A stretch of DNA of 64,000 bases from Zygnema circumcarinatum SAG 698-1b (GCA_037447605.1 CM074819.1:1262297-1326296); one strand, 5' to 3'. Positions 16,457 to 26,711 are shown, counted from the stretch's first letter. The notes: a model not told the origin generated them from the sequence alone. A program made the numbers and translations.

Positions 16457-19295
16457 TCAGAAGTCCGCCACCTTCTTGTTCCCTTCCACATCGCCCTCCG
16501 CGAGAGCGATGACTCCCGCGCGGCCGCGTTCGCCCTTGGCGTTCTCCGCGAACTGCGCTCAAACCAAAGCACAGCAAAGAGGGAGGGCGGCCGCCCGTCA
16601 GCACTCGCCGCAGCGCGCACTCCCATTGGCGGGCGGGCACTGCCCTCCCCTCCGCCCCTGGGACCAGCCTCGGGGCCCCAACCCTAAAAAGGGGCCACAA
16701 CCCTAAAAAGGGGCCACAACCCTAAAGAGAAGGTCACAACAGCAGGGGAAGGGAAGGGACGAGGGGCGAACCTTCATGGAGGCGGCGTGCATGTTCTCCT
16801 GCTGCTCCTTTTCGTTGTACTCGGAAGCATAGTAGGCTTCCTCCGTGGCGGAGGGGGCCTTGGAGGCAGGAAAGATGATGCCCCCCCACTGCGGGAAGTA
16901 GATGAGGAAGGTGAGCATGGTGATGGACATGATCATGATTCCCATGTACTTGAACCCGTCCTCGGTGGCATACGAGTTGTATGTGAAGAAGACGGCCTGC
17001 ACAGGCATCGCTCTCAGTTGCAGTCAGGACGAGGCCGCGCACATGCAGTACAAGCCCCACTGACTGCCAGCAATGGGAATCATTCTGTCCCAGTAGTTAG
17101 CACAGTGAGAGTGAGGGAGGGAGGGAGAGGGGGAGGGAGAGAGGGAGACGAGGAGGAAGGCGCCCACCTGCGTGACGAAGGAGCCCACATTGCCGCCCGA
17201 CCCGGTTATTCCCGAGACTACGCCGAGCGCGCGACGTGACACGAAGGGCACGACCCCGAAGGTGGCTCCGCAGGCGGCCTGACAGAAGAACGAGAACACG
17301 ATCAGGACGATCACGGAGGAGGACACGTTCGTCATGTACCCCAGCGTCAGGCAGAACACGCCGCCCAGAGTCTGCAAAACAACAGGCGGCAAAGGAGTCA
17401 GAGAGAGACAGAGAGAGACAGAGAGAGAGAGAGAGAGAGAGAGAGAGAGAGAGAGAGAGAGAGAGAGAGAGAGAGAGAGAGAGAGAGAGAGAGAGAGAGA
17501 GAGAGAGAGGGCCGCATAAAGAGCACAGAGAGACCCCGCTCCCAAACATTCTCAAAGGTCCGTGACAGAGCCGAGTTGTACGGTCAGAGGCTCGCCCTCC
17601 CACCTGGACTATCCACAGCCACAAGAGACGGCCCCGCATTCCAAAGCGCTTTGCCGCCACATCGGACATAATGCCTCCGGTGGGCCTCGAGAAGATATTC
17701 ATGAGCCCGAAGGACGCTGCAGAGAGAGAGAGAGAGAGAGAGATTGAGAGAGAGAGAAAAGGCCGGTGAGACCGTGCACAATGGAATGATGAGGGAGCGG
17801 GGGAGCCATTCCTCTCTCCTTTCAAAAACCAACGCAGTGCGGGAAGGGGGGGGCTGCATGACTGACAGGCGATGATGCCGGCCTTGTTGGAGTCCACCCC
17901 GAAGCGGTCCACGAAGTAGTTGTGGATGGTGTTGTCCACCGTGAGCTCCACGCCGAAGCAGTAGCCGTACAGCAGGAACATGATGTACGTGCGGTAGTTC
18001 GTCAGCGCCGCCAACATCACCTGCGCCCTCGCCCAAGGGGGAGCCCCGTCAGCACCCTCCGCCGTACAGGAGGCCGCGCCCGCCTCCACAGCGCGCGAAC
18101 CAATTCAATTCCCCCCCCAGGGGGCGCAGTTCCAGGCCCTAATTAAAAGGGGCGGAGAGGGGGGGGCGGAGAGGACCTTGGAGAACTTGTCCATCTTGCG
18201 CGCGCCCGCCTTGCTGAGCGCGAGGTACTGGCCGTCGGGGCAGTCCTGCCCGAAGGTGAGCACCAGGAGCCCCACGAAGAGCTGCGCGACGCCCGGCACG
18301 AAGAAGGCGAGCCGCCACGCGGCGAACTCTTTGGCTCCGAACGAGTCGCGGATGAGCGACTCCAGGTACGGCATCAGCAGCTGGATGAACCCGCCGCCCA
18401 GGTTGCCCCACCCCGCCGTCACGCCGTTCGCCAGCCCCACGATCTTCGCGTTGAACATGGAGCTCATCCAGTACTGCCAAGCCCCCCGCCGCACCCGGTC
18501 AGCCGTCCATGAGGGAGCTGTGGGAGGGAGAGGGAGAGAGAGGGAGAGGGGGAGAAGAGGTGGGAGGCGAAAGGGAAGGCGGGGAGCACCTGGCAGGTGA
18601 CAAACGTGGCGAGGGCGAATCCGATGAAGAGGCGCACGACGATGTAGCCGGTGGCGGTGGAGACGGCCGCCATGGAGAGCGTGCAGGGCACGGTGGCCAT
18701 GAGGAGGAAGGCGGCGCCGTAGCGCGGGCCCACCAGGTCGCAGATGGAGCCCATGATGACACGCGAGAGCACCGCGCCCACCACGGAGGTGATGGCGGCG
18801 TTGCCCACGTCCGTCTTGGTCAGGCTGATGTTCTCGCGGATGATGGGCACCAGCGGCGGCGCCGCGAAGGACGAGCAGAAGGCCGTGAAGAAGGAGAACC
18901 ACGCGAGGTGGAACGCGCGCATGTGCGGCTGCGCCACGCTGAACAGCTTGATCTTCTTCGCCTTGTGCTCCGAGTCCACCGGCAGCGGGAACAGCCCCTC
19001 CGCCTCGTCCGTCTGCGCCGCGTTGTACTGGAATATCGGCTCCCTGCACGCCCCCCATGCCCGCCACCATCCCCCCTACCGCCGCTCAGCGCCCAACCCA
19101 TGCAATGCCATACCATGCCATACCTTGCCATACCACCATGCCGCACATTGCTAAGCCCCAATTCCCCTCCCCATCTGGTGCCCCTTCCCGCCCTCCTGCA
19201 TCCTCCTGCGCTCACCTGCCCGTGACTCCCCGCATGGACTCCCCGGGCTCGCCGGGAGCGTCCCTCCCGATGGGCGCCGTGGTCTGGTCCGCCAT
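16457..19295 (-). CDS. NRT2: High-affinity nitrate transporter NRT2, copy a (8 exons; ends KKVADF*)
   Basis: MFS NNP-family motifs [29 protein letters not shown]-like, [48 protein letters not shown]; GT-AG introns. Confidence 0.95.
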
Positions 19296-19403
19296 GGCTG
19301 CTGCTTCCTTCCTTCCTTCCTAGCGCGAGGCCTGTTTGGCCGGACAGTCAAGCTCCCTCCTTCCCTTGTCCTCCTCCTCCTCGCGCTCGCTGGGCGGGGG
19401 CGG
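16470..19403 (-). repeat. Left arm of the NRT2 inverted duplication
   Basis: Near-perfect reverse complement of 23849-26698; near-identity ends abruptly at both ends. Confidence 0.95.
17400..17508. repeat. (GA)n microsatellite in an NRT2a intron
   Basis: About 50 GA units; much shorter in the equivalent intron of copy b. Confidence 0.95.
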
Positions 19404-26698: not shown

Positions 26699-26711
26699 TG
26701 AAAACTATTAG
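23957..26711 (+). CDS. NRT2: High-affinity nitrate transporter NRT2, copy b (8 exons; ends KKVENY*)
   Basis: Same exon structure and protein as copy a except the last residues; ATG at 23957 ([15 protein letters not shown]). Confidence 0.95.

Follow-up and report, generated by a model that had tools for sequence, protein, structure and literature searches.

Gene conversion between neighbouring or inverted paralogs is a textbook process. In mammals, the neighbouring Hsp70 genes HSPA1A and HSPA1B are reported to be kept almost identical by purifying selection together with interlocus gene conversion (PMC5865164), and palindromes of the Y and W chromosomes are described as spacer-separated inverted duplicates homogenised by intrachromosomal gene conversion (PMC3403216). 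Within the NRT2 family of nitrate transporters, near-identical paralogs have been reported in rice (OsNRT2.1 and OsNRT2.2), and in Brachypodium the coding sequences of BdNRT2A and BdNRT2B are nearly identical and indistinguishable by RT-qPCR (PMC6405861). Full-text searches returned no paper analysing gene conversion or concerted evolution for NRT2. Here, we describe a head-to-head pair of NRT2 genes in a stretch of 64,000 nucleotides (hereafter, the window) from the streptophyte alga Zygnema circumcarinatum SAG 698-1b (GCA_037447605.1 CM074819.1:1262297-1326296). An earlier reading of this DNA (hereafter, the original prediction) took the pair to be an old inverted duplication kept near-identical by gene conversion. 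In our analysis, the locus is best read as an old inverted duplication on which gene conversion has acted recently, and probably repeatedly, a reading in which we have considerable confidence.

A head-to-head pair of predicted NRT2 genes in an inverted repeat

A repeat finder and a BLAST comparison of the reverse-complemented left side with the right side both revealed one inverted repeat, with arms at 16470-19403 (left) and 23849-26698 (right), also seen by global alignment; the near-identical arms that had been proposed were thereby recovered with exactly the same limits. The single BLAST alignment joins left 19425-16470 to right 23831-26698. Among 2,846 ungapped columns, 16 hold substitutions; the arms are further distinguished by a few intron indels. 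In 100-column windows of the global alignment, identity is 90–100% within the arm limits, except in two windows, one occupied by a microsatellite gap of 80 bp, the other straddling the 3′ limit, and it falls to 30–60%, with many gaps, beyond them, which is the outcome of the sliding-window comparison of both loci that the original prediction had called for. At the 5′ end, the right ATG (23957) sits 108 bp inside the identity block, and at the 3′ end identity stops at 26698, in the fourth codon before the stop (26709-26711), both as predicted. The arms are separated by a spacer, or loop, of 4,445 bp (19404-23848), which is unique except for the promoter blocks (see below); internal or dispersed repeats other than these were looked for in the loop and not found. 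The only runs of N in the window, at 9458-9467 and 49642-49651, are both far from the NRT2 pair.

The left NRT2 gene extends from ATG to stop over 16457-19295 on the minus strand and the right gene over 23957-26711 on the plus strand; the genes are thus arranged head to head, 16457 and 26711 being the ends of the two stop codons. Each gene has eight exons and encodes 540 amino acids, ending in KKVADF (left) or KKVENY (right). The exons of the right gene are at 23957-24036, 24209-24662, 24779-25075, 25232-25385, 25540-25652, 25805-26008, 26176-26400 and 26616-26711; those of the left gene, obtained by projecting the right exons through the arm alignment, are at 19295-19216, 19043-18590, 18473-18177, 18020-17867, 17716-17604, 17371-17168, 16996-16772 and 16552-16457, on the minus strand. 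The exon peptides gave 100% matches in tblastn, and an all-frame reading yielded a coding sequence of 1623 nt without internal stops, every intron being of the GT-AG type. The two coding sequences differ at one synonymous position (right 26349) and at 8 of the 13 final nucleotides, and the two proteins in their last three residues only (ADF on the left, ENY on the right). Long bacterial-style open reading frames in the arms were also considered; they have no Pfam match and were rejected as wrong frames of GC-rich DNA, the real gene being spliced.

As judged from sequence, both arms encode predicted NRT2-type nitrate transporters. Exons 2–6 match the TIGR00886 (NarK/NNP) model colinearly over positions 1-367 of 368, in segments 1-109, 125-196, 220-267, 273-302 and 303-367 with E values from 4e-24 to 2e-4; the exons were scored singly (85, 51, 38, 21 and 45 bits), and the whole-protein cutoff of 311.7 bits does not apply to single exons. 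In a word search with exon 2, plant NRT2.1 proteins were the nearest named relatives among the fragments retrieved, the exon being 64% identical to a Cryptomeria ‘high-affinity nitrate transporter 2.1’; a Mesotaenium protein shares 58% identity with it. The protein has the two glycine-rich nitrate signature motifs, one at residue 199 (GWGNLGGG) and one at residue 423 (GSGGNVG), which we take to represent the GWGNxG type in the first half and the GGNxG type in the second half of NRT2/NNP proteins. Arginines occur in REN (96-98) and FSRPTGG (337-343) contexts, which may correspond to the conserved substrate-binding arginines of helices 2 and 8. A crude hydropathy scan gave 10 peaks, some of them overlapping, the twelve-helix MFS fold being the expectation for the family. 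Pfam MFS_1 gave only sub-cutoff matches, to exons 2 and 3, and a PDB sequence search with exon 2 gave no match.

The loop carries a gene of its own, on the minus strand (22167-23057). Its exon at 22866-23057 encodes a U1-type zinc finger (PF06220, zf-U1; E 1.7e-08), and an exon-like frame at 22167-22313 encodes what we take to be a CCCH finger; with the name U11/U12 snRNP 20K (ZMAT5-like) that we presume for its product, this is probably the gene for a minor-spliceosome U11/U12 20K protein. Its 5′ end faces the promoter of the right NRT2 gene, which lies ~900 bp away, and the two genes appear to share a divergent promoter region of that length. The loop also contains a decayed interstitial telomere-like array, (TTAGGG)n, at 20135-20336 on the plus strand (about 32 units, 69% matches), ~730 bp upstream of the left arm, which may be the scar of an old break or rearrangement.

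Elsewhere in the window, a repeat dispersed at 7616-8114, 14896-15301 and 55585-55919, with 79–84% identity between copies, is probably a transposon fragment; one copy lies downstream of the left NRT2 gene, at a distance of 1.2 kb. A reverse-transcriptase domain on the plus strand (2859-3593; PF00078, E 1e-30) indicates a retroelement near the start of the window. A G-rich satellite of 3.8 kb (59474-63268) consists of about 206 copies of the 19-bp unit GGCATTGGGGAGGGGGAGG, reaching a GC content of 0.73 and a GC skew of 0.84, with all six frames open, and a similar, GA-rich array of 1 kb lies at 51179-52175. The neighbouring genes include an ankyrin-repeat exon (36959-37687), the C-terminal part of COG7, a Golgi complex subunit (45920-46627), and a gene for a DUF7796 protein on the minus strand (47744-49126). 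A limited Pfam scan of the neighbours in the window found no other nitrate-assimilation gene, and the pair therefore belongs to no visible nitrate gene cluster.

Differences between the arms and between their flanks

The 16 substitutions that distinguish the arms all lie between 26070 and 26597, that is, within the last 630 of the 2,846 aligned columns, the first being at column 2217. Under a uniform spread, clustering of this kind has a P value of 3e-11, and an equally long clean run was not seen in any of 200,000 permutations; a test of the GENECONV type, as had been suggested for this locus, thus shows the differences to be non-random. The arms are consequently two-tiered, since substitutions are confined to the 3′ end. 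The substitution-free tract (23849-26069, plus strand, mirrored on the left at 19403-17103) spans the 108 bp that resemble a 5′ UTR, exons 1–6, introns 1–5 and the start of intron 6, and contains two length differences only, in a C-run and in a (CT)n. All of the substitutions are in the second tract (26070-26698, plus strand, mirrored at 17102-16470): six in a GA-rich patch of intron 6, one, synonymous, in exon 7, and nine in intron 7, about half of the latter within a 19-bp tandem repeat. We conclude that the first 2.2 kb were homogenised very recently and the 0.6-kb 3′ part earlier or less often. The GA-rich patch and the 19-bp repeat, which between them hold 11 of the 16 substitutions, may mutate fast; the other five, although in ordinary sequence, likewise occur at the 3′ end alone (P ~3e-4, by hand calculation).

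Indels between the arms are restricted to introns. The first three introns show no difference at all, and in introns 4 and 5 only repeat lengths vary, through the CCCC at 25399-25402 and an 80-bp (CT)n present in the left copy alone (17430-17509); further small indels are found in introns 6 and 7. The 19-bp repeat of intron 7, with the unit GGGGCCACAACCCTAAAAA on the plus strand of the left copy, is present in 3.4 copies on the right (26429-26493) and 2.9 on the left (16672-16726), and accounts for several of the arms' few differences. In addition, a CCAAT-containing stretch of 46 nt in intron 7 (26532-26577 and 16591-16636) resembles a segment of the left promoter block (19553-19598), with 74% similarity; the likeness may reflect a shared regulatory element or chance.

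According to the original prediction, the sequence just outside the arms is diverged but still homologous on both sides. This held upstream. Local alignment identified a collinear block of ~170 bp in the two promoters, at 19520-19685 (minus strand) on the left and 23618-23792 (plus strand) on the right, with ~69% identity, several indels, and shared motifs that include CCAAT and CACGTG. Its score of 48.5 compares with 14.2 ± 1.6 for shuffled sequences (z ~21) and was not equalled in any of 256 alignments to 1-kb controls taken from real sequence; no further copy of the block was found in the window. The distance from the block to the identity boundary is ~116 bp on the left and ~56 bp on the right, the last 25 bp being partly alike. 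The regulation of the two genes may have diverged and evolved independently. A half site resembling a nitrate-response element, TGACCC-N12-AA, is limited to the right promoter (23822-23841); it was discarded, being no more frequent than expected by chance in the window.

At the opposite end, the prediction fared less well. In the terminal codons, 7 of 15 nucleotides match, the stop position is the same, and the D/N and F/Y exchanges are conservative, which is suggestive of homology, though not significant by itself. Further downstream, a weak candidate block of 96 columns (26881-26974 on the plus strand, against left 16206-16296) is collinear, at 182 and 173 nt from the arm ends. With a score of 25 (z ~9), it exceeds every shuffled sequence, but 12 of 256 controls drawn from real sequence reach the same value; the downstream homology was therefore rejected as significant and is only marginal.

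The arms also stand out as a GC-rich island, with a GC3 of 0.92 and an intron GC of 0.57–0.71; GC3 is ~0.5 in the neighbouring genes, the corresponding value in the downstream flanks is ~0.49, and the 3′ boundary coincides exactly with a drop in GC from 0.68 to 0.39. The island could be a footprint of GC-biased conversion. As specific proof of biased conversion, however, it was set aside, since apparently single NRT2 loci of other organisms are also GC3-rich: in metagenome loci without a second copy in the sequence fetched, GC3 is 0.57–0.78, against 0.32–0.39 in the flanks. It is not counted as evidence here.

Probable gene conversion and its alternatives

Near-identical arms could be the product of a single recent inverted duplication of ~2.9 kb, alike without any conversion because they are young. 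The absence of substitutions over 2.2 kb, the essentially unrelated downstream flanks and the lack of an NRT2 pair in distant relatives (the metagenome loci, see below) all agree with such an event. However, the adjoining promoters are homologous at ~69% only, with indels, and one event cannot give both; a single recent duplication is insufficient because 100% identity adjoins 69%, and the original prediction was right to judge it unfit on this ground. The strong clustering of the differences towards the 3′ end also speaks against it, as do the 8 differences in 13 nt in the last three codons, where the stop position has been kept, and we consider a young duplication very unlikely. Purifying selection alone, acting to keep two old copies identical, would account for proteins that are the same except for three residues, but not for introns 1–5 and all synonymous sites of exons 1–6, which are identical too; selection on the protein is for this reason insufficient, and with intron identity refuting it, this explanation has practically no probability left.

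A different concern is an artefact of assembly or polishing, through which real paralogs with some divergence were polished to one consensus by multi-mapping reads, or part of one arm was filled from the other. Perfect identity over 2.2 kb is the pattern expected of mis-polishing, and the window does contain two scaffold gaps (see above). On the other hand, the microsatellite lengths and the C-run stay distinct inside the perfect block, and because the arms differ at these fast-mutating sites (the 80-bp CT run and the C-run), they represent two separately assembled loci and not one sequence present twice. Moreover, identity reaches the 5′ boundary without an edge gradient there, and the 4.4-kb unique, gene-bearing loop and the differing flanks speak against a fold-back chimera. 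Finally, reads cross-map only between similar copies, so that conversion would still be required given promoters of 69% identity. We regard an artefact as unlikely; homogenisation by polishing, itself of low probability, is the main remaining risk to the interpretation of the arms as products of conversion.

The identity of introns and silent sites beside promoters that are ~69% identical fits the conversion of old paralogs, and the concerted evolution of an inverted repeat, as originally proposed, is upheld in this sense. We infer conversion as the process, as well as its recurrence and its 5′-to-3′ polarity. The inverted duplication, of an NRT2 gene with at least ~300 bp of its promoter, would be much older than the state in which the arms are now found, and it is ‘old’ in this relative sense only. 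Since then, one gene would repeatedly have been overwritten by the other through intrachromosomal, arm-to-arm gene conversion. The most recent conversion, in one event or several, would have covered the 5′ UTR through intron 6, now without substitutions, and an older or rarer tract would have stopped 13 nt short of the end of the reading frame. The promoters and the 3′ ends would lie outside the conversion tracts, and hence be diverged. The step in divergence from 5′ to 3′ suggests nested tracts, or a conversion gradient from the loop side, and the indels that adjoin the 5′ boundary probably block heteroduplex extension, a plausible, if hypothetical, barrier to the extension of the tracts. The outcome would be two genes for the same transporter with different upstream sequences.

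A hypothetical crossover between the arms would invert the loop, so that each promoter came to lie before the gene with the other three-residue tail and 3′ UTR. Since nothing but these ends would be exchanged, the inversion would be nearly neutral. A broader scenario, which we put forward tentatively and consider rather doubtful, is that of a long-lived single-gene palindrome in which conversion initiates from the 5′, loop side and fades in the 3′ direction, conversion is recurrent and GC-biased, and crossovers flip the loop. If this were true, the loop-side start and 3′ fading would account for the stepwise rise in divergence from 0 to ~2.5%, the GC3 of 0.92 and intron GC of 0.64 in the arms, within a region of ~50% GC, would be due in part to recurrent GC-biased conversion, and arm crossovers would swap the pairing of the promoters with the C-terminal tail and 3′ UTR.

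Comparison with other NRT2 loci and with known systems

A metagenome scan with exon 2 identified 15 related loci, with 43–63% identity and moss-like intron patterns, and all of the exons match moss-like NRT2 loci, at 47–73% identity. A second NRT2 copy was found in none of the six long metagenome loci (11.5–20 kb, with up to 10 kb per side and less at contig ends); the head-to-head pair is thus not an ancient arrangement common to those distant relatives. Contigs from different samples seem to carry the same moss-like NRT2 genes (L002, L005 and L007 on the one hand, L011 and L014 on the other); the genes of these five contigs have two to three introns, as compared with seven in this alga, and the intron positions differ.

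The process invoked here is ordinary and well known, and knowledge of gene conversion or of NRT2 is unchanged by it. The locus nevertheless illustrates concerted evolution in a streptophyte alga cleanly and within clear bounds, the same predicted nitrate transporter being placed behind two differing promoters. Its transcripts are separable only by the last 13 coding nucleotides and the 3′ UTR, and expression studies must target the 3′ ends because most of the transcript is the same in both genes. In addition, phylogenies of the NRT2 family will date the duplication far too young, and the two diverged promoters provide a natural footprint of shared elements.

Among the systems described so far, the rice genes OsNRT2.1 and OsNRT2.2 resemble the algal pair in combining an identical transporter with differing non-coding ends; the rice paper states no mechanism, the term ‘gene conversion’ being absent from its text, and in the alga, the identity extends in addition to ~108 bp of 5′ leader and to sequence amounting to seven introns. 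BdNRT2A and BdNRT2B are from a grass, not an alga, and neither their arrangement nor conversion is analysed in the report on them (PMC6405861). HSPA1A and HSPA1B are intronless animal genes of a family other than NRT2. The Y and W palindromes have arms ranging from tens of kb up to Mb and belong to sex chromosomes that do not recombine; the algal pair, in contrast, is a single-gene palindrome of 2.9 kb set in ordinary, gene-rich surroundings.
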